Program-made: the position numbers and the translations under genes | In this document: positions 26,446 to 63,104 of the stretch, piece by piece | How positions within the stretch are numbered: position 1 is the stretch's first letter | How the letters are laid out: each line of letters starts with the position of its first letter | Virus record (IMG/VR): IMGVR_UViG_3300035070_002626 | Coordinates: 62,001-126,000 of that record | Strand: one strand, 5' to 3' | DNA length: 64,000 bases | Notes under the pieces: model-generated | What the model saw: the letters and a program-made list of their open reading frames with translations, nothing else | Databases searched by the model: none | Told to the model about the DNA's origin: nothing

Positions 26446-26928
26446 TTATCTTAGAAATTCTTCAGGCGACAAATCATAGTACATACTGTTGACTCTATGC
26501 ACACCTAATAGGTATAGAACATAGCTAGCAACACTGGATCCACGGCCGACGCCCCATATGATATTATTGTCTTTTAATGTATCAACAAGATACTTGAGAT
26601 ATTTTAACAAATTAAACAAGTCACGTTCTTGATACAGCAATAATTCATGCCCAACTCTTTGTAACTCTTCGGGTGTTTTACAACACTCAATAACATGTTT
26701 TGCAATGTCTAAGTCGTGGTATTCATCTGGCATTAGCCATTTTTGTTGATTTGCACGATCGTATTCTTCAACGGTAATAGAGTTGTCAGTTGCATTTACA
26801 AACTCAACATCATCAGGATGATCCACAGTGTGGTCCACAGTAATACCTGAGATGTTTTGTTCACTCATAACAAGATCTACTACATCATCGATGTTATATA
26901 CCAGTTCACCAAATTTATTTTTTATCAT
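26446..26928 (-). CDS. Stand-alone fragment of DNA polymerase III alpha (DnaE-like)
   Basis: YLKYLVD...WGVGRGSSVASYVLYLLGVHRVN matches DnaE GPGRGSAAGSLVAY(C)LGIT. Confidence 0.8.
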   Translation of the reverse strand: MIKNKFGELVYNIDDVVDLVMSEQNISGITVDHTVDHPDDVEFVNATDNSITVEEYDRANQQKWLMPDEYHDLDIAKHVIECCKTPEELQRVGHELLLYQERDLFNLLKYLKYLVDTLKDNNIIWGVGRGSSVASYVLYLLGVHRVNSMYYDLSPEEFLR

Positions 26929-27853: not shown

Positions 27854-28762
27854 TTAGGCAAATGTTACGCCATTGATTCCAACTGCAAACCATTTGTCGT
27901 TTACATATTGCAAGGTGCATGCGTCACCAACATCATTAAATGTAATTGTGCCGTCGCCACTTGCTTTCCAACCGCAGTTAGTAACAGTTACTACCATATC
28001 GCCGCTGTCGGCTACCATCATAAGTGTTTTAATTTGGCCTTCGACACCAGCTGCAAGAGTTGCTGTTTCTGCACCACCTGTTGAGAAATAACTTGCAGTT
28101 ACTGCCAAACTAATTGCTGCTGCATCTGCTACGTCTTCGTTACCTGCTAAAATTAACGGGTTCATAAGTCTGTTGCGTGGGCGTGTTAGTTCACTTAGGT
28201 AAATTGTTGTACCACCATCATCTGTGTGGAACTCGAACTCATATGTGCCAGTTTCAGCGAATGTAATAACATTCGAACTAATTCCCTGGATGCCTGCTAC
28301 GCTTTGTGCTGAACCAGCTGAACCAACGGCTGCCGGAAGTGTTACGGTGTGTGCAACATTGGCAACAGTAATTCGTACATTAAACCAACTTGCATTACCG
28401 CTTGCTGGGATGTTAGTAAATGCTAATGAAATGCTGCCACTGGTTGTAACAGTATACCATTGTCCTGCGCTATAATCAATGGTTGCTGTACCAGTTGTTG
28501 CAGGTAATGCAATACGAGTGCCACGGAATGCTTGTGTCTTCATATTTTCTACTAGCGCACCGGCCATGTCGTTGTCTAGTGTAGTGCCTGTTAGTGCACT
28601 TTTGAAGATACCTTTTGCTTGTAAATCATCAATTTCAGTCTCTGCATATTCAAAGTTTGTTTTGATGTTTGTAAAGTTATCACGAAAGCCCTGACTGTCG
28701 TTATCCTGCCCAGCAATAGGGTAGGTGGTATCTATATTGTTGGGATTGATATTGCTTGTCAT
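27854..28762 (-). CDS. Putative virion structural (baseplate/tail) protein
   Basis: MTSNINPNNID...YPIAGQDNDSQGFRDNF N-terminus; Thr/Ala/Gly-rich beta body; in structural operon. Confidence 0.7.
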   Translation of the reverse strand: MTSNINPNNIDTTYPIAGQDNDSQGFRDNFTNIKTNFEYAETEIDDLQAKGIFKSALTGTTLDNDMAGALVENMKTQAFRGTRIALPATTGTATIDYSAGQWYTVTTSGSISLAFTNIPASGNASWFNVRITVANVAHTVTLPAAVGSAGSAQSVAGIQGISSNVITFAETGTYEFEFHTDDGGTTIYLSELTRPRNRLMNPLILAGNEDVADAAAISLAVTASYFSTGGAETATLAAGVEGQIKTLMMVADSGDMVVTVTNCGWKASGDGTITFNDVGDACTLQYVNDKWFAVGINGVTFA

Positions 28763-28772
28763 TTTTCTCTTC

Positions 28773-31700
28773 TTATCCTAAAATAGTTGTCTTCGGAAAT
28801 ACAAGATATTTATCGTATTTGTCCGTCTTACCGTACATATCTACGGGTGTAGTAAACCTCAAACTATTGCCATCGAATGTGGTTGCATTGTTAACTGCAC
28901 TAGTTGCAACATAACCTGCTTCTCCCTGATCGTTGTCTTGGAAGATGCTATTCAATGTAGCAAAGTTTGGTTTGCTCAGTACAGGTGCAAAGTACTTCTC
29001 AAACAGTGCATGCCCTAATGGGTTGTTTGCTAATATGCCAGATGGTGTTCTCATTAGATCGTTCCATTCCGGTGCTAGACTTTCGCCAGCCCAAAAAACA
29101 CTCATCTCCCACATGCCCCAATTTAGCAAATACATGTACTCTTTCATTAGTACACCTGCTTCCTGTGGGTCGTACGGGTCACTTGCGCCAGCATCATACA
29201 TACCATTGTCAATTGCTTGTTCCATTGCTTTAAATAACTCAGTGCCTGTGTATGTTCCTGGGTTATTTTCACTGTCCCAGTTGAGTTCAGTAACTGATCC
29301 TTGAACACCGCCACGTACACCATATAGATGTATTGTATGCATAATGTGTTCAAACACTTCTTCAATGTCTTTAGTTCCAGTGCCGTTCCAGCCGTTGTTG
29401 TTTTTATACCATACCATGTCGTTAACTGCATGCTGGTCTAAAAAATCTGTGTAACCAGCATAAGATGCTGCACCTATATCGGTTAGCCAGTTTGGAGAAT
29501 AAGAACTGCCGCCGCCATACCCAATTCGTTGTGCAGTTTGGTAGCCAGCATGCCAAGTTCCAGCTGCACCATTTAGTGTGCGGATCATTTGTTGTTGTGC
29601 TGTAGTATTGATTCCCGTTGCATCTTTGTCCATTAACAGTTGATAACTTCTACCAACCTTTTTGACCCAGGCATCAGGTACAGCCTCTTGCCCGCCAACT
29701 GCTCCTGCTGCAACAACTAGTATGCCGTTAACCGTTAAGCTTCTGTCAAAGATTTCACTATTAGTAGCGTCAGCAACCAACGATGTTGAAACATACAAAC
29801 CACTTATATTAAATTCAACATCAAACGTAGTGCCAAGTGGCGGTGATGGGTTCCATGCTCCACCGTCTGTTGAATCTTCGTTTGGTATCCAGTTTGCAGT
29901 AAGTTGGTTGTCTAGTATATATCTATCACTGATAAAGTCCACGCGATTTAGTATTTCACCAAACTGTGTGCGTATGTTATAACTAATTCTATCACTTTCA
30001 CCTGGATTGGTATAACAAATCACCCACGCTTTAGTAAAGCCTAATACTCTACCATCTGTTTGTTTTGTGGTCATCCACAATGGCAACACTGTGTTTTCTT
30101 GTCCAACAACATCGACAACTTGATTTCGCATGTTAACCAAACTATTCGGATACACAGTGCTAATGGTTTGATCAACTTCGCCTGTGGTTGGGTCGTATAC
30201 AAAAGAACTGTAATACAATATCAAGTTGTCAAAGTGTTGATCAATTGGCGCATAATAATTAGTTGGCCCAACAGGAAACTCACACTGATTCTCCACACCA
30301 TCTTCGTTTTTATTATTGTATGGATTCTGGGGATGTCTAAGTGCATACGAGTAACAACAACAGATTGAATGATTCTTTGATATGTCTTTTTTACCATTAG
30401 AGTCTGTATACAATGTATCAAACAAAACTTCTTGAGCAACTGGAATAAATCCCAATAATGGCCCAGGAAGTGTTGGTACGAGATCATTTTTATTTGTAAG
30501 CCTGTAAAAGTTATTGCCCAGCGTGTTACCGTCTTTGTCTTCAAGAGCATTAAAGTAATCAGCGTATATTTGGTTACCCACTGTTGGTGATGCGCTCACA
30601 TAACCTTCGACGCGGTTAAATTTGTTCAAACTTTGAGCATAGTTGGCAATCAATGTACTGATCGAACTTCCAAGACTGTGTCCTCCAATTTTGATTTTTG
30701 TTTTAGTGGTGTCGTTTAACACAGTGTACAAACTCTTACCTGGAACATCTGCTGCTCGAACTTCAAGAGGGTCAGGACCAAGACCTTTGTATGCCATAGT
30801 AAATCCATTTTGTGTTTTACCTTTACCAAAGCCGGCAATTGGATTTATAACTTTTCCACTCATAAAGTCTAACGTAAAATCATATGAAGTTTGTGTGCCA
30901 CGCATTGTGATGTATGCAGTATCACCTACTTCTATTAAAAAGCCAAACGGTGCAACACTGCGAACTACCTTAGGCGGATCTAGTTTTTGACCATTGGGAT
31001 CCTTGTTGATGGTTACTGTATAGTCACACCATATAATATCATCTGCTGTGAGTGCTTCGAGTGCTGACCTAAATTTCTCATATCGTAACGGTTCGTTGAT
31101 GTTTACCGGACATTGGTTACTTGGTGCTGGAGTAAAAGTATCGTTTGCTTTAGGATTTGGAATATATTTGTTACCATCCCAACGTTCTGCAGGATCTCCT
31201 GGTTGTCCTTGCCCAACCCAATCTCTAGCTAGTTGACTCATGACATTGGTTAGAAGGTTTAGATCTCTTGCTTCTTCTAAATATGCTTCGCTTACTTGAT
31301 TAAGTGCAGTTACATTCGGATCTCCAATGCTGCCATTGCTAAAGTTTTCATCAACTAATTCTCGAGCTTCGGTGGCTGCTTGATTCGGCACTGTAACAGG
31401 ATACGGCAGATTAATACTTTGCGGCGGCGATTCTCCGAGTTTGTTTACGCCAGTGTCAATTACGTCACTGTACACAACTTCGTATGCAACTGTTCCGTCA
31501 CTGTTTAATGCTTGTGCTGTTTTTATGTTGCCAAGTATTAACTTCTTTCGAAAGTGATTTTTGCTCAGTGCAACCAAATATTCGTCAAGTGTAGCAGTAT
31601 CCAAGCTATATGCATGTGTGTAAGTTACATTTTTTGCAATACCAAAATATGGGTCATCGGCTCTATACACTCTACTAGGCGGAATGATATCAGTATCTTG

Positions 31701-33266
31701 TAACAAACTGTCTACAAGATTCCTGTCTGCATGGTCAGGCATTGCTTTGATATACAATCCTTGGTATGGGCTGTTGTATTCTCTGTCAACAGTGATCCGA
31801 AAAGTCCTACTAACACTAATCAATCCATCTGAGCTGTATGCTACTACTGTGAAATCAAAATTCTTATCCCATGTAGTTTCGGTTGTTGTTAATCTAGTGC
31901 TTGCTTCTTTGTCAAACGTGGTTGTACCGCCGTCAAACGTAAATGTATTAAAGCTAACACGACCTGCAATATGCCCACTTTCAAGTAAACTTAATCCTTG
32001 CGGTAGCAAGTTGTACTGTCCTGGCGTTGAAGGATATGTACCTTGTTTTAACTTAAATTGCAACGACCTGTCACTTGGGTTGCTTGCCAAAACGGAAAAC
32101 ATACTGATTGCACCGTTGCTGATTTCGCCTAAACTGTATATAGGATCGTTAACATCTCTGCCTGGAATCAATGTACCAGTTAACCATGTGACACTACTTT
32201 CGATGTTACCGATGACAGTCATTGTGTATTCGTAAGGTTCACTTACAATGCTGTTGTTGTCTTTCTTGTAAATAGTAATAGCAAATGTGTATTGAAGTTC
32301 TGTTGCACCCTGATCTGGGAAGAATCCAGTTAACCATCCTGTGAATCGATCAAACGTTATGCCCGGGGGAATATCACTACTGTCGCCTTGTTCAATTTCA
32401 AACTCGAATAAATCACCGTCGAGATCCAATCCTTCGATTTGATATGCAAAGAAATTGTCGTGCCTAAACGTTCCTATAATGCCGTTATCCGGATAGTTAA
32501 TAATAAGAGGAGTACGGAATGGCGAAAGATCTGCTGTAAGTACATCAGAATCAGCTGTAAAGTCTGTTGTGTCTGCTGTTAAACTATCTCGGCTAACAAC
32601 ATACATCGAGAATGTTCTTAGGTTTTGATCTTTCCCATCGGTAATTTTTACTGTAAATTCGTATGTTTGGTTAATACTGCGAGTACTAAACGCAAATGGG
32701 TACAAATCAAATTCACTAGCATCGTACCCAACTTGGGCATCATTTGGCAAGTTACTAATTGGCAAAATGTATCCAGTGATGGCACCTGTGAGTGGATTTA
32801 AACTCAAGCCTGGCGGAAGAGTTCCAATGTCAACACTAATAGTCGCAACATCGCCTGGATCTTGATCATTAAAACCAATGGTAATGTTAACTGTATCTCC
32901 ATCAAAGAATGTGCCCAATGAACCAGATGGTGTAGTAAACTGTGGAATATCTTGGCCTGTAACAGTTAATGAAAATGTTCGATCATTAATCTGTCCATCA
33001 GTGCTTGTTGCACGAATTGCAAAAGTTGATGTTACATTTTCGGCAACTTCACTTGGTACACCTTTAACCATTGCTTGTGCTGTTGGCACACCTTCAACAA
33101 TTCCATTTGTTGTTACTTGTACACCTGCAGGCAATTGTCCAGCAATTAGTGAGTAAGTTACAGCACCGCCATCGGGATCAGTTGCCACAATTGGCTGGTG
33201 GAAAAATAGACTCTCGGCTATGGTTCCAAGATTGCCGGCAGGTGTTACCCAGACTGGTTGTGCCAT
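28773..33266 (-). CDS. 1497-aa putative baseplate wedge protein with Ig-like (He_PIG) repeats, inserted class 3 lipase and a second inserted domain
   Basis: LPAGV/LPPGLSL Ig-like repeats; MRGT, GHSLGSS, NDLVP, H lipase motifs; EHIMHTIH domain near the C-terminus. Confidence 0.75.
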   Translation of the reverse strand: MAQPVWVTPAGNLGTIAESLFFHQPIVATDPDGGAVTYSLIAGQLPAGVQVTTNGIVEGVPTAQAMVKGVPSEVAENVTSTFAIRATSTDGQINDRTFSLTVTGQDIPQFTTPSGSLGTFFDGDTVNITIGFNDQDPGDVATISVDIGTLPPGLSLNPLTGAITGYILPISNLPNDAQVGYDASEFDLYPFAFSTRSINQTYEFTVKITDGKDQNLRTFSMYVVSRDSLTADTTDFTADSDVLTADLSPFRTPLIINYPDNGIIGTFRHDNFFAYQIEGLDLDGDLFEFEIEQGDSSDIPPGITFDRFTGWLTGFFPDQGATELQYTFAITIYKKDNNSIVSEPYEYTMTVIGNIESSVTWLTGTLIPGRDVNDPIYSLGEISNGAISMFSVLASNPSDRSLQFKLKQGTYPSTPGQYNLLPQGLSLLESGHIAGRVSFNTFTFDGGTTTFDKEASTRLTTTETTWDKNFDFTVVAYSSDGLISVSRTFRITVDREYNSPYQGLYIKAMPDHADRNLVDSLLQDTDIIPPSRVYRADDPYFGIAKNVTYTHAYSLDTATLDEYLVALSKNHFRKKLILGNIKTAQALNSDGTVAYEVVYSDVIDTGVNKLGESPPQSINLPYPVTVPNQAATEARELVDENFSNGSIGDPNVTALNQVSEAYLEEARDLNLLTNVMSQLARDWVGQGQPGDPAERWDGNKYIPNPKANDTFTPAPSNQCPVNINEPLRYEKFRSALEALTADDIIWCDYTVTINKDPNGQKLDPPKVVRSVAPFGFLIEVGDTAYITMRGTQTSYDFTLDFMSGKVINPIAGFGKGKTQNGFTMAYKGLGPDPLEVRAADVPGKSLYTVLNDTTKTKIKIGGHSLGSSISTLIANYAQSLNKFNRVEGYVSASPTVGNQIYADYFNALEDKDGNTLGNNFYRLTNKNDLVPTLPGPLLGFIPVAQEVLFDTLYTDSNGKKDISKNHSICCCYSYALRHPQNPYNNKNEDGVENQCEFPVGPTNYYAPIDQHFDNLILYYSSFVYDPTTGEVDQTISTVYPNSLVNMRNQVVDVVGQENTVLPLWMTTKQTDGRVLGFTKAWVICYTNPGESDRISYNIRTQFGEILNRVDFISDRYILDNQLTANWIPNEDSTDGGAWNPSPPLGTTFDVEFNISGLYVSTSLVADATNSEIFDRSLTVNGILVVAAGAVGGQEAVPDAWVKKVGRSYQLLMDKDATGINTTAQQQMIRTLNGAAGTWHAGYQTAQRIGYGGGSSYSPNWLTDIGAASYAGYTDFLDQHAVNDMVWYKNNNGWNGTGTKDIEEVFEHIMHTIHLYGVRGGVQGSVTELNWDSENNPGTYTGTELFKAMEQAIDNGMYDAGASDPYDPQEAGVLMKEYMYLLNWGMWEMSVFWAGESLAPEWNDLMRTPSGILANNPLGHALFEKYFAPVLSKPNFATLNSIFQDNDQGEAGYVATSAVNNATTFDGNSLRFTTPVDMYGKTDKYDKYLVFPKTTILG

Positions 33267-35780
33267 TTAGAGCCTTCCTACTACTACTTCGATCGTTCCG
33301 TGAGTTCCGTCAAAATCTTCTAACGCTTTACCAATCACTGTGCCCATTGCTGGGTTAGCTTCGGCCCTTGCTTTACCAGTTGCAGTGGAAACCATCATGT
33401 CTCCTTTGCGAACTGGCCCAACAACATGAGTTGGTACTCTGCCTGTTAATGCAACAGCAACACCTATTGCATCACTGTTCATTAAATGTGCAGGATTAGT
33501 ACTAACTACACCTGCTACTCTCGGACTAGCGTCTTCGTTGCTTACTGTTACTTCAGCATCACCGCCAAACATCAAAACTGTACCCGGTTTATAATCTTCA
33601 TCACTTGAATACATTTCTGCTAAGTCGGCGTATTGGGCTGATGTAGCTTGTGCTGTCATTGTACTGGCACTAAAGTTACCGCTGCCATCACGTAATACGA
33701 TTGTGTTAAACGTGTTCGCACTTGCTGCTGCAATAGTTGCACTGTTTGACTGGCTTGTAATATTAGCAGCGGTAATTGAATATGTTCCACTTAGTCTAGC
33801 ACTTGGTACTGTGCCGCTTGCTAAGTTGCTTGCGTTTAGATTGGTGATTCCAGCGCCTGTGGCTGTAATTGCCCCTGCGCTAAATGCACCACTTCCGTCC
33901 CTTAGCACGATCTGGTTAGCAGTGTTTGTACTTGCTGCGGTAATAGTTGCACTATTTGATTGACTTGTAACGTTGGCCGCAGTGATCGAGTATGTCCCGC
34001 TTAGTCTAGCACTTGGTACTGTCCCTGTGGTTAATTGAGTTGCATTTAATGCAGTCAGGCTTGTACCTGAACCAGCTATTGAGTTAAATGTTGCGTCATA
34101 TGTGCTGTCTAATGAGAAGGTAACACCGGTTAAGTCAATACCGTTGCCTGCACTATAAATCTGTGCACTTGAAATTTGTACAAAAGTTATATCAGTAGTA
34201 CCGAATGTAATTGTACCTACTGTGTTCATTACATATGTTTCACCGGCACCCGCAGCACCTTCTTGCACAAAGAAAGCATCACCTTGTCCTAGTGAATCAG
34301 GATCACTTGGCGAATATGAATCAGCGTCTGCGGCACGTGTTAATACCCAGTTTGTACTAACACTACCAATATCGGTAACAGTGTACACACCGTTTTGACT
34401 AGCATCTGTTTGTTCATATACTAATACTCTGTCAGCAACAACCATTGTAACGCCATCAATAACAAGAGCTGCCTGTGTACCGGCATTGGTTAGTGTAGCA
34501 CCTACACCACTTGCGCCATTGTTGTACGTAGCATTTAAGTTGCCTTCTTGTTCAACTCTAACTGGATCGTGGTAGTGAATGCCTGCGGCTGCAATTGTGT
34601 CAACGTAGGTTTTAGTAGCAGCGTCTTGCGCAGCCGAAGGATCAGCGAGACCTGTAATGTAGTTGCTGCCCATTGCAATATTAGCAGATAATTCTAGTCC
34701 CGTACTTGCAACATTAAAGATTGTAGCACCACCTACATTGCCTTCGATGTTGCCACCGCTTGTAGTAACTTCGATACTGCTAGTGCCGTTTTGAATCTGT
34801 GTAGCATCAATGCCTGTTAGCTGACTACCATCGCCAAGAAGTGGAACTTGGAAATCTATAGTTGTGCCATTTGTTTCAAATACAAGTACACCGCCAGATG
34901 TTAGTTCAACATTACCGCCAGAACTACTAATACCGACAACACTTGTTCCATTTGCAATCTGTGTAACAGCAACGTTGGACGCAGCCGTTACGTTTGAAAG
35001 AAATCCGCCATCGCCAATAAAATACGCTCCAGTAATGTTTCCAGTAGCAGTAACATCAGAACTTGCTGATAATCCGCCAATTGTTAGGTTACCACCTTGT
35101 ATATTGCCGGTTGCTGTAATATTACCGGTTGCATCAATGTATCCTGTGATATTAGCACCAGCATCGCTTACTGTGAGTGTGTTTATTGCATTTGCAGTTA
35201 TTTGCACATCACCGTCAGTTGCTGGGATGGCAATCGACGATGTTCCATTGCTAATAGTAGGATTAATACTGCCGGGTGTAGTACCATCTGCGCCAAACAC
35301 ACTGAGCACATTGCCAGCACTTGCTTTTAATACAATGTCTCCGAGTACAATACTGCTACCACTTAGATATATGTCTTTCCATCTTGCACTGCTCGACCCT
35401 AAGTCTCTAGTGCTGTTGCCGTCTGGGATAAGATTACTACCTAGTGTTCCGTTGATAACAAGCTGGTCACCAACTGTTACATCTTGCGTAATTGTGAAAC
35501 TGTTACCAACTGCTAAATCGCCTGAGATATTAGCGTTCCCAGTAAACTCAGTTAAAGATCCTGAAAAGTTGACAACATTGGCACTGCCGGCAATACTAAT
35601 TGTAACATTAGCATTTTCAGCAACAGCTATATTTGATGTGCCGTTGATAATTTCAGTAGGTGTGGTTGTAGTGTTGTACAGTTCTTGAAAGTTATCATTA
35701 CACTTGATATAGGCGTTTCTAAGACCATCGCCTGTTCCATCATTGGCTGTTGCGCCTACATTGATAATCTGTCTTGCCAT
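33267..35780 (-). CDS. Tail fibre/baseplate-attached protein with C-terminal chaperone/autocleavage-like domain
   Basis: N-terminal INVGATANDGTGDGLR (gp9/gp10-like) motif; C-terminal AQYADLAEMY...PGTV...PAMGTVIGKALE. Confidence 0.75.
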   Translation of the reverse strand: MARQIINVGATANDGTGDGLRNAYIKCNDNFQELYNTTTTPTEIINGTSNIAVAENANVTISIAGSANVVNFSGSLTEFTGNANISGDLAVGNSFTITQDVTVGDQLVINGTLGSNLIPDGNSTRDLGSSSARWKDIYLSGSSIVLGDIVLKASAGNVLSVFGADGTTPGSINPTISNGTSSIAIPATDGDVQITANAINTLTVSDAGANITGYIDATGNITATGNIQGGNLTIGGLSASSDVTATGNITGAYFIGDGGFLSNVTAASNVAVTQIANGTSVVGISSSGGNVELTSGGVLVFETNGTTIDFQVPLLGDGSQLTGIDATQIQNGTSSIEVTTSGGNIEGNVGGATIFNVASTGLELSANIAMGSNYITGLADPSAAQDAATKTYVDTIAAAGIHYHDPVRVEQEGNLNATYNNGASGVGATLTNAGTQAALVIDGVTMVVADRVLVYEQTDASQNGVYTVTDIGSVSTNWVLTRAADADSYSPSDPDSLGQGDAFFVQEGAAGAGETYVMNTVGTITFGTTDITFVQISSAQIYSAGNGIDLTGVTFSLDSTYDATFNSIAGSGTSLTALNATQLTTGTVPSARLSGTYSITAANVTSQSNSATITAASTNTANQIVLRDGSGAFSAGAITATGAGITNLNASNLASGTVPSARLSGTYSITAANITSQSNSATIAAASANTFNTIVLRDGSGNFSASTMTAQATSAQYADLAEMYSSDEDYKPGTVLMFGGDAEVTVSNEDASPRVAGVVSTNPAHLMNSDAIGVAVALTGRVPTHVVGPVRKGDMMVSTATGKARAEANPAMGTVIGKALEDFDGTHGTIEVVVGRL
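33660..34070 (-). repeat. Internal 70-aa (210-bp) tandem duplication in the tail fibre
   Basis: GTVPSARLSGTYSITAAN..VLRDGSG twice; identical 23-mer at ~33790 and ~34000. Confidence 0.85.
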
Positions 35781-35832
35781 TGTAATCCTCTAACTTGCTG
35801 TTATGAGTATTTATGGCTTGGAGTAAGTTATA

Positions 35833-36288
35833 TTAGCTTATGTTGACCCAGGCACTGCCGTTGTAACCTTGAAATGTTGTTCCGGTAAGCACAATCATGC
35901 CTGCTGCAGGCGTAGTAATTGCTGCATCTCTTGCTGCGGTATCGGCATAAACAGGAAGTGTTAGTGGACCAGAACTAATAATGCCAGCACTGCCTGCATA
36001 TATGCCACGTGGGCGATTGGTTGCACTGCCGATGTAACGTAGATCGTTGGTATCGGGGATAACGTTATTAGTAATTTGAATAACACCGGTGCCATCTGTG
36101 GCTAGTGATATATTACCATTTGTGTTTGTGCTTGTGATTGAGTTGTTTGCGATGGTGATGTTTGATCCAACAGGACCAGCAGTGTAAACTTCTGTGAAGT
36201 TGTCGTTGGTTTTATCCATTGCGCTGCGAAGATTATCACCATCGCCTGCGTTTGCTGAAGTTCCTAAATTGATTATTTGTTGTGCCAT
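35833..36288 (-). CDS. Short structural protein with gp9/gp10-like N-terminal motif
   Basis: MAQQIINLGTSANAGDGDNLR...NDNFTEVY; late promoter 36312..36317. Confidence 0.75.
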   Translation of the reverse strand: MAQQIINLGTSANAGDGDNLRSAMDKTNDNFTEVYTAGPVGSNITIANNSITSTNTNGNISLATDGTGVIQITNNVIPDTNDLRYIGSATNRPRGIYAGSAGIISSGPLTLPVYADTAARDAAITTPAAGMIVLTGTTFQGYNGSAWVNIS

Positions 36289-36321
36289 CTAACGATCCTT
36301 TAATACTAGTGTATTTATGGA

Positions 36322-62177: not shown

Positions 62178-62309
62178 GATTACCTCCTGATTATATTAAC
62201 TACACCACTAATATAGCATATATCAAAATATTGTCAACCGAATTATGTCTTATGGATGTTACTGAAAGGTATACGATAAATAATATAATAACAATATAGG
62301 AGTTTTATT

Positions 62310-63104
62310 TTGAGTACCCCATCGAGTATTAATGCATTGCATTGCAAACAACGTAGTTTGTTAATGGCTAAGTTGTCTCGTATTTCTTACTTTGATGTAA
62401 AAACAGCAACCAAGGAAGCAAGAAAATTGGGGTTTACTACAGTAGAGTTTTACGATAAAGACGGAGCACAAGCATATCGCTTTATGAATAAAACGGACCT
62501 GGTTATTGCATGCCGAGGTACACAACCCAGCGAGTTTAATGATATCAAAGCAGACTTAAAAGCAATGCCGGTTCTTGCAGAAACAGTTAGCAGGGTGCAC
62601 AGAGGATTTAAAAAGGAAGTCGACGACCTTTGGCCAATGATACAAGAAGATTTGTTGCGCAAAACAAATTTAGACAAAACTCTTTGGTTCTGTGGACATA
62701 GTTTGGGAGCAGCAATGGCTACTATCATGGCTAGCCGTTGTGTGCACAATATAGAACTAAATGATCCAGCCGAACTACACACATTTGGTAGCCCGCGAGT
62801 AGGCTGGCGCAAGTATGTTAAGAGTCTAGGTGTAGTACATCATCGCTGGAAGAACAATAATGACATTGTCACTACTGTTCCTCTTGCTATTATGGGATAT
62901 GTGCATCATGGTAATCTATATTATCTCAATGCCTACGGACGAGTGCGTACACCCACTGGATGGCAATTAATCAAAGACAAATGGCGTGGCATTTGCATGG
63001 GTCTAAAACAAGGTAAAATAGACAACTTTAGTGATCATTCGATTGATGAGTACGTCAAATACATACAACGCCATATTGAATGGTTACCAAATAAAAATGA
63101 TTAA
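62310..63104 (+). CDS. Class 3 lipase (alpha/beta hydrolase)
   Basis: ACRGT, VHRGF, GHSLGAA, TFGSPRVG, NNDIV, DHS; TAAATA at 62277. Confidence 0.9.
   Translation: MSTPSSINALHCKQRSLLMAKLSRISYFDVKTATKEARKLGFTTVEFYDKDGAQAYRFMNKTDLVIACRGTQPSEFNDIKADLKAMPVLAETVSRVHRGFKKEVDDLWPMIQEDLLRKTNLDKTLWFCGHSLGAAMATIMASRCVHNIELNDPAELHTFGSPRVGWRKYVKSLGVVHHRWKNNNDIVTTVPLAIMGYVHHGNLYYLNAYGRVRTPTGWQLIKDKWRGICMGLKQGKIDNFSDHSIDEYVKYIQRHIEWLPNKND

Follow-up and report, generated by a model that had tools for sequence, protein, structure and literature searches.

The 64-kb window analysed here (bases 62001–126000 of the 299,910-bp linear IMG/VR virus record IMGVR_UViG_3300035070_002626; all coordinates are positions in this window) contains on its minus strand an open reading frame (ORF) of 1,497 aa, P0001 (28773–33266), which carries a complete class-3 lipase inside a conserved scaffold. 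The inserted segment of ~410 aa is a genuine class-3 lipase/esterase domain (Lipase_3, alpha/beta-hydrolase), and its in-frame insertion at a fixed position, site A, is strongly supported by comparison with related proteins. In fact, the lipase is a mobile, exchangeable cassette: site A is either empty or holds one of several divergent lipase alleles, and a second insertion socket, site B, is likewise either empty or filled with one of several other modules. Judged from its sequence the inserted lipase is probably catalytically competent, and the protein that carries it is most likely a peripheral virion protein, associated with the baseplate or the fibres.

A first-pass annotation of the window had read a set of motifs within this ORF as a complete Lipase_3 signature, and all of them are present where it had placed them: YITMRGT (residues 785–791), GGHSLGSS (861–868), SPTVGN (893–898), NDLVP (927–931) and a histidine further downstream. 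Pfam assigns residues 785–935 to Lipase_3 (PF01764; 30462–30914, minus strand; E 1.5e-18), and with a score of 67.5 bits, the cutoff being 22 (72.6 bits in a six-frame scan of the phage's own genome), the match is far above chance. GGHSLGSS, with the nucleophile expected at ~30669–30683, was found at 30663–30686; it comprises the GxSxG elbow (G862-H-S864-L-G866) with S864 as the nucleophile (codon 30675–30677, minus strand; in GGHSLG, residues 861–866). In a sequence search of the PDB this serine aligns with the GHSLG serine of Aspergillus feruloyl esterase A (FaeA) and of Yarrowia Lip2. The triad aspartate D928 (codon 30483–30485, minus strand), an Asp in the D-x-(V/I)-P context, is aligned likewise, its surroundings NKNDLVPTLP matching THSNDGIPNLP of FaeA and HRGDIVPQVP of Lip2. 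The probable third residue of the triad is H966 (codon 30369–30371, minus strand; in NHSICCCYSYAL), which sits in NHSICCC downstream of the Lipase_3 profile match; the sequence-profile matches end before it, and in the structural model described below it is residue 352, inside the structurally aligned range 31–391. R789-G790-(T/S)791, H863-S864-L865-G866, D928, P931 and H966 are invariant in the 31–38 lipase-bearing homologues, although the alleles are only 32–46% identical on scaffolds that are 78–100% identical. This conservation of the Ser-Asp-His set on strongly diverged alleles makes enzymatic activity plausible.

Structure prediction, which the annotation had named as a check, agrees with the family assignment. 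An AlphaFold2 model of residues 615–1047, based on 33 homologous inserts, reached a mean predicted local distance difference test score (pLDDT) of 87.4 and a predicted template-modelling score (pTM) of 0.88 and has the class-3-type alpha/beta-hydrolase fold, low confidence being confined to two short ends at the scaffold junctions. When this model was compared with known structures using Foldseek, plant phospholipases A1 (PLA1) were ranked first (E ~1e-10); the best and longest structural matches are phospholipases A1, with 280 aligned residues that include an N-terminal helical extension.

The insertion itself becomes apparent from the relatives of P0001. A word-based search recovered 802 of them from metagenomic contigs, the longest measuring 539 kb, and 107 apparently complete family members were used for the insertion statistics. 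In the family alignment the scaffold is conserved at about P0001 residues 1–624, 1037–1150 and 1460–1497, and site A lies between LPYPV (residues 620–624) and TVYPNSLVNMR (residues 1037–1047), the two segments between which an in-frame insertion had been suspected. Site A measures 8–11 residues in 76 of the 107 members, i.e. the lipase-free orthologues have a short loop at this place, and 382–477 residues in the other 31, where it always contains Lipase_3. From the junctions in sister pairs (LPYPVT on the one side, QTITTVYPNSL on the other) we obtained the limits of cassette A, which spans residues ~626–1033 (30168–31391, minus strand) and consists of the lipase with its N-terminal helical extension; the interval proposed at first, 30180–31390, was almost exact.

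Close relatives differ in their cassettes. P0021, which has the lipase, and P0081, which lacks it, show identities of 97%, 97% and 100% over the three segments of the scaffold, while the inserts of P0021 and P0007 are 97% identical on N-terminal scaffolds with only 55% identity. The scaffolds of P0009 (lipase, empty site B) and P0012 (no lipase, module B) are 98–100% identical, and P0009 and P0024 carry lipase alleles of only 45% identity on the same scaffold. All four combinations of filled and empty sites A and B occur among the 107 members. On a scaffold tree built from 775 scaffold-only columns the presence of the lipase changes at least six times, with at least five changes forced by well-supported branches, and the class of site B changes at least 20 times. 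At the cassette borders no flanking direct or inverted repeats above chance were found, i.e. there is no transposon-like signature, and G/C content as well as G/C content at third codon positions (GC3) are equal in insert and scaffold. The simplest mechanism would be that the cassettes were moved by homologous recombination in the conserved flanks.

Variation at the allele level is also found inside a single sample. The ENA long-read contig ctg49515_10x_l (539,231 bp) contains two syntenic copies of the locus, L017 and L019, which lie 327 kb apart and have scaffolds with 78–92% identity but lipase alleles with only 32% identity. The spacing of the two copies gives the approximate genome length of this lineage (~330 kb); the contig thus corresponds to ~1.65 genome units and is either a concatemer or a merger of two co-occurring strains. 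The same architecture recurs in dozens of independent ENA, JGI and Logan contigs (57–93% identity) and in 9 IMG/VR loci, and in a scan of IMG/VR the lipase cassette was confined to the P0001 family. When close relatives of the insert that stand free were sought by a word search, five matches were obtained, all of them Lipase_3-bearing or unannotated and mostly on short contigs, and the inserted lipase has neither a tblastn match in 50,697 phage records nor a PHROG match. Its nearest structure in the Atlas belongs to a 233-member cluster of free Lipase_3 proteins of ~348 aa (template-modelling score 0.81 by target), among which Uroviricota is the commonest known phylum; the insert may therefore plausibly descend from a stand-alone phage lipase.

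P0001 is read in a single frame that is continuous and open across 4,494 nt, with the conserved scaffold broken by the two cassette sites. The N-terminal scaffold (residues 1–625; 31392–33266, minus strand, as are all parts of this ORF) is composed of about five immunoglobulin (Ig)/cadherin-like (He_PIG) domains, three of which are found by Pfam as He_PIG Ig-type repeats, followed by the beginning of an alpha/beta core; it is kept across the family, with invariant columns spanning residues 1–613 in the alignment. Cassette A is followed by the middle scaffold (residues 1034–1150, containing TVYPNSLVNMR; 29817–30167), which is kept in all family members, by the exchangeable cassette B (residues 1151–1459; 28890–29816) and by the C-terminal scaffold as defined by the alignment (residues 1460–1497, TTFDG..RF..P.D.YG.TD.YDKYLVFPK.NILG; 28776–28889). 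Some relatives extend past this conserved ...FPK-NILG terminus: P0017, P0019, P0020, P0023, P0027–P0032 and P0038 have Ser/Gly/Tyr-rich low-complexity tails of 155–204 aa, and P0046–P0054, P0061 and P0063 have proline-rich tails of 14–15 aa. The variable C-terminal tails are a third variable position of this protein family.

Among the 107 members site B is between 1 and 520 residues long and falls into several length classes. Module B of P0001 (residues ~1170–1453) shares 40% identity (E 7e-69) with a segment inside Syn33_094, a cyanophage protein of 1,721 aa that is annotated as 'baseplate wedge subunit' (phrog_708) and encoded between gp9 and gp8. The similarity is restricted to module B, the remainder of the two proteins being dissimilar, and P0001 does not match phrog_708. 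Module B carries a conserved E-H-x-x-H-T-x-H motif and has neither a Pfam match nor a PDB sequence match; a feature search of the Atlas gave a weak pointer to zinc-peptidase clusters (0.77–0.81), which we regard as a lead only. Module B may be a second enzymatic module.

As to the carrier, its neighbours in the genome are informative. The start codon of P0001 abuts the stop codon of an 837-aa ORF (33267–35780, minus strand) whose N-terminal domain is of the T4 gp9/gp10 type and whose C-terminal parts resemble tail fibres, and a 151-aa ORF (35833–36288, minus strand) with a gp9/gp10-type N-terminal domain follows upstream. These two are the only T4_gp9_10_N genes of the 300-kb record, and relatives keep the gp9/gp10-adjacent gene order whether or not they have the lipase. 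On the other side a conserved 302-aa ORF (27854–28762, minus strand) begins 10 nt past the stop codon of P0001; its counterparts measure 296–305 aa in L017 and in two further loci, L004 and L005, and in L019 ORFs of 95 and 163 aa are found instead. Furthermore, genes with P0001-like N-terminal Ig-type (He_PIG) domains sit in the tail-fibre modules of pelagiphage HTVC200P and of the OM43 phage Melnitz, and cassette mosaicism is typical of host-recognition proteins.

ATAAATA is the core of the T4 late promoter. Within the window, 7 of its 13 copies are located 23–28 nt upstream of a start codon on the same strand, compared with 0–3 so-positioned starts for each of 20 permuted heptamers of the same composition. 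The gene starts concerned are 11765, 14209, 26417, 35780 and 36288 on the minus strand and 54767 and 62310 on the plus strand; the genes behind the motif include both gp9/gp10-like ORFs, the endolysin gene and a free-standing lipase gene discussed below. The copy at 35808–35814 (minus strand; context CCATAAATAC) lies 27 nt upstream of the 837-aa ORF and is kept in L017 and L019, where the GCCATAAATACTCA context is preserved as well, and the copy at 36312–36318 (minus strand) lies 23 nt upstream of the 151-aa ORF. The exact TATAAATA is not enriched in the window, the shorter ATAAATA being the positioned element. By analogy with T4, ATAAATA probably is the late promoter core of this lineage, and the 837-aa ORF would then head a transcription unit that holds P0001, which would be transcribed late. 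Taken together, the gp9/gp10 neighbours, the synteny, the ATAAATA motif, module B, the He_PIG relatives and the mosaicism make it likely that P0001 is a peripheral virion protein; it may belong to the baseplate, or its position may be that of a fibre, a whisker or a capsid decoration.

On these grounds we suggest the following course of events. P0001 would be made late together with the gp9/gp10-type baseplate-fibre proteins and would be assembled into the tail periphery, where its scaffold would hold the lipase on flexible junctions and display it outside the particle. Upon contact with a host, the tethered lipase would cleave ester-linked acyl chains of envelope lipids or of lipid-anchored surface material, for instance by a PLA1-type attack on outer-membrane phospho- or glycolipids, and the barrier might thereby be loosened locally or a receptor exposed before the tail contracts. 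Lipase alleles would swap and diversify in step with the surface chemistry of the hosts. For the whole chain from late assembly over virion display to lipid hydrolysis at entry, we consider the chances of being right and of being wrong to be evenly balanced.

Several observations weigh against this course of events. The first-pass annotation had read the carrier as a putative baseplate protein, and gene position, the positioned and conserved late-promoter-like motif and the module shared with cyanophages agree with this; the scaffold, however, matches no baseplate or fibre family in Pfam, PHROG, PDB sequences, Foldseek searches of the PDB or BFVD, and the assignment to the baseplate is thus circumstantial, its basis being gene context. 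Pfam finds He_PIG alone, both on the scaffold pieces and on all 45 insert-free members. P0001 has no match in PHROG; for the scaffold, nothing significant was obtained against PHROGs at E 0.1 and nothing in a profile search of PDB sequences. In the model of an insert-free orthologue of 888 aa (P0049; pLDDT 68, pTM 0.38) about five beta-sandwich domains precede an alpha/beta region, and Foldseek searches of the PDB and BFVD with this model yielded nothing beyond cadherin/Ig arrays and generic Ig-rich phage proteins. In this model site A is a turn between two short strands, predicted with low confidence, and near the insertion site the scaffold is modelled poorly (pLDDT <60). In addition, the major structural genes are distant (gp23 is ~150 kb away), Pfam finds no Baseplate_J in the 300-kb record, and replication genes follow immediately downstream of the locus. 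Finally, in a typical Gram-negative bacterium the outer membrane has an outer leaflet of lipopolysaccharide and not of phospholipid, so that the substrate is not obvious.

One alternative leaves the enzyme on the virion and changes its target: a displayed carbohydrate or small-ester esterase might act on a surface polysaccharide or glycoconjugate, remove its ester-linked acetyl, acyl or phenolic groups and in this way modify or destroy a receptor. The quick turnover of alleles would suit variable surface glycans, and deacetylating tailspikes are established virion enzymes (PMC5380687). However, known phage deacetylases are of the SGNH type and not Lipase_3, no SGNH/GDSL esterase family was found in P0001 by Pfam at E <= 0.01, the fold being that of Lipase_3, and the best and longest structural matches are the phospholipases A1 with 280 aligned residues. 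We regard such an esterase as unlikely.

We attach a still smaller probability to a late product outside the virion, i.e. an accessory of egress or lysis that would attack the outer membrane or envelope lipids from within when the infection ends, in the manner of mycobacteriophage LysB, or would be released at lysis onto neighbouring cells or vesicles. The late-promoter-like motif also precedes the endolysin gene, and late timing therefore cannot tell lysis from structure; moreover, the scaffold has no recognisable virion-anchoring domain and the genes that flank the locus downstream are non-structural. For a lysis protein, on the other hand, a length of 1,497 aa and an architecture of about five Ig-like domains plus two cassette sockets would be atypical, and neither a signal peptide nor a transmembrane segment is evident at the conserved N-terminus of P0001 (MAQPVW...), as judged by eye from the sequence and without a predictor. 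P0001 also adjoins fibre-type genes with gp9/gp10 N-terminal domains at the level of translation, has module B in common with a cyanophage baseplate gene and shows the cassette mosaicism that is a hallmark of host-recognition proteins. It is very improbable that the lipase fold is a pseudoenzyme, serving without hydrolysis as a binding or structural module for a lipidic or glycan receptor, as the invariance of Ser, Asp, His, GxSxG and RG(T/S) in spite of an allele identity of 32–46% is the opposite of what pseudoenzymes show. An artefact in which a separate lipase gene was wrongly joined to a structural gene can be dismissed, even though the record is metagenome-assembled, because many independent assemblies (dozens of contigs and the 9 IMG/VR loci) have the same architecture and the frame and base composition continue without a break from scaffold to insert.

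The virus that carries P0001 can be placed by its genes. Its record (CheckV completeness 86%) has a gene for a major capsid protein of the T4 type (Pfam Gp23, E 2.8e-100), and the window contains genes for a clamp loader, an endolysin and a MazG-like pyrophosphatase; together these genes identify a T4-type jumbo myovirus. By protein segment its closest relatives in the databases are marine, namely cyanophages, pelagiphages and Melnitz. A search at the DNA level gave no isolate phage matching the record, and no psbA was found in its 300 kb. Some further genes of the region may be mentioned. Behind a late-promoter-like motif lies a gene for an ATP-dependent-protease-like protein of 761 aa (9480–11765, minus strand; phrog_4871, E 1.4e-228). 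At 26446–26928 (minus strand) there is a small ORF whose match to DNA polymerase III alpha covers no more than a fragment of that protein (phrog_11127/PF07733); its position is kept in L004, L017 and L019, its length is 157–173 aa, and a polymerase module may have been split or have degenerated here. The gp9/gp10-like cluster has Peptidase_S8 genes close upstream in L017 (1330–3096) and L019 (2245–3438), but the window has none at this place, and S8 proteases with He_PIG domains are among the weak phage matches (Sinorhizobium phage Phosso, Atu_ph07).

The window encodes a second lipase, which had also been noticed in the first-pass annotation and is confirmed here: a free-standing Lipase_3 ORF of 264 aa (62310–63104, plus strand; Lipase_3 E 7e-20; phrog_21992, esterase/lipase) with GHSLG at residues 129–133, the His motif DHSIDEY and an ATAAATA at 62276–62282, 27 nt upstream of its start. 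Its relationship to the inserted lipase is remote (30% identity over 81 aa). Its relatives annotated as lipases are found in phage XacN1 (28% identity, E 2e-8), in P-SSM2 and P-SSM5 and in Cylindrospermopsis phages ('class 3 lipase'). The lipase of the jumbo phage XacN1, ORF279, has been detected in virions by proteomics (PMC5852040).

Going one step further, the findings could be combined into a picture that we offer tentatively and hold to be possible rather than probable: a widespread marine lineage of T4-type jumbo phages of ~330 kb would possess a two-socket platform at the baseplate periphery for the swapping of enzyme cassettes, with PLA1-like lipase alleles at site A and a putative metallohydrolase-like module, among others, at site B, and the lipase would be an obligatory early virion enzyme directed against outer-membrane or surface lipids of the host. 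If the proposed entry role is true, a tailed phage would have an entry enzyme that attacks membrane lipids, analogous to the Tle2 effectors of type VI secretion systems (T6SS) and to the phospholipase A2 of parvovirus capsids, and the identity of the cassette would help to set the host range. Enzymes that degrade glycans and peptidoglycan are known from the tails of tailed phages; virion enzymes directed against lipids have so far only been predicted, or found once as a free packaged protein (XacN1). Here a conserved and, by prediction, probably active lipase is built into a protein of the tail cluster in an abundant uncultured lineage of marine jumbo phages. The natural near-isogenic pairs with and without the lipase, or with different alleles, make it possible to test whether the lipase is used for passage of the envelope and whether the identity of the cassette follows the surface chemistry of the host. 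With its two fixed internal sockets the protein is, moreover, a natural blueprint for the display of foreign domains on a phage protein, and P0001 is a case of domain-level mosaicism apart from the usual C-terminal swap.

Compared with known systems, the insert resembles plant DAD1-like PLA1 (PDB 2yij, 7x0c, 7x0d), fungal lipases (4tgl, 1tib) and FaeA (1uwc) in its GHSLG elbow, its D-x-(V/I)-P and its probable His motif H-x-I/L-x-x-x-Y, and plant PLA1s also in the N-terminal helical extension. It differs from these solved class-3 lipases in sequence (16–22% identity only) and in being nested in a loop of a phage protein, whereas they are free secreted or cytosolic enzymes. With the free phage class-3 lipases (XacN1 ORF279, P-SSM2/P-SSM5, the Cylindrospermopsis phage protein, phrog_21992) it shares a phage-encoded Lipase_3 domain, but it is covalently built into a scaffold while they are separate proteins. 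Predictions of virion lipases exist for other phages as well, and a review of 2017 noted that experimental validation was lacking (PMC5380687). Like depolymerase tailspikes, deacetylases and the phi11 tail protein Gp44 (Tal), which has a lipase/esterase C-terminus, P0001 would present an enzyme on a putative tail-associated protein for passage through the surface layers of the host, and like virion-associated tail enzymes in general it shows domain mosaicism between related phages (PMC5380687). Unlike these enzymes, which usually are C-terminal on an N-terminal anchor, that of P0001 lies internally within a loop, and the protein offers another internal socket besides; tail-associated enzymes also mostly target glycans or peptidoglycan, whereas the enzyme fold of P0001 is Lipase_3. 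The T6SS effectors of the Tle2 type, e.g. TseL of Vibrio cholerae, are PF01764 lipases that a contractile machine related to phage tails delivers against the membrane lipids of a target cell (PMC9846239). They can be cited as functional analogues by the shared domain type only: Tle2 is a separate VgrG-bound cargo with an immunity protein, a context that is not seen around P0001 and, being unexpected in a phage, was not searched for, while the lipase of P0001 is part of a structural-type protein.

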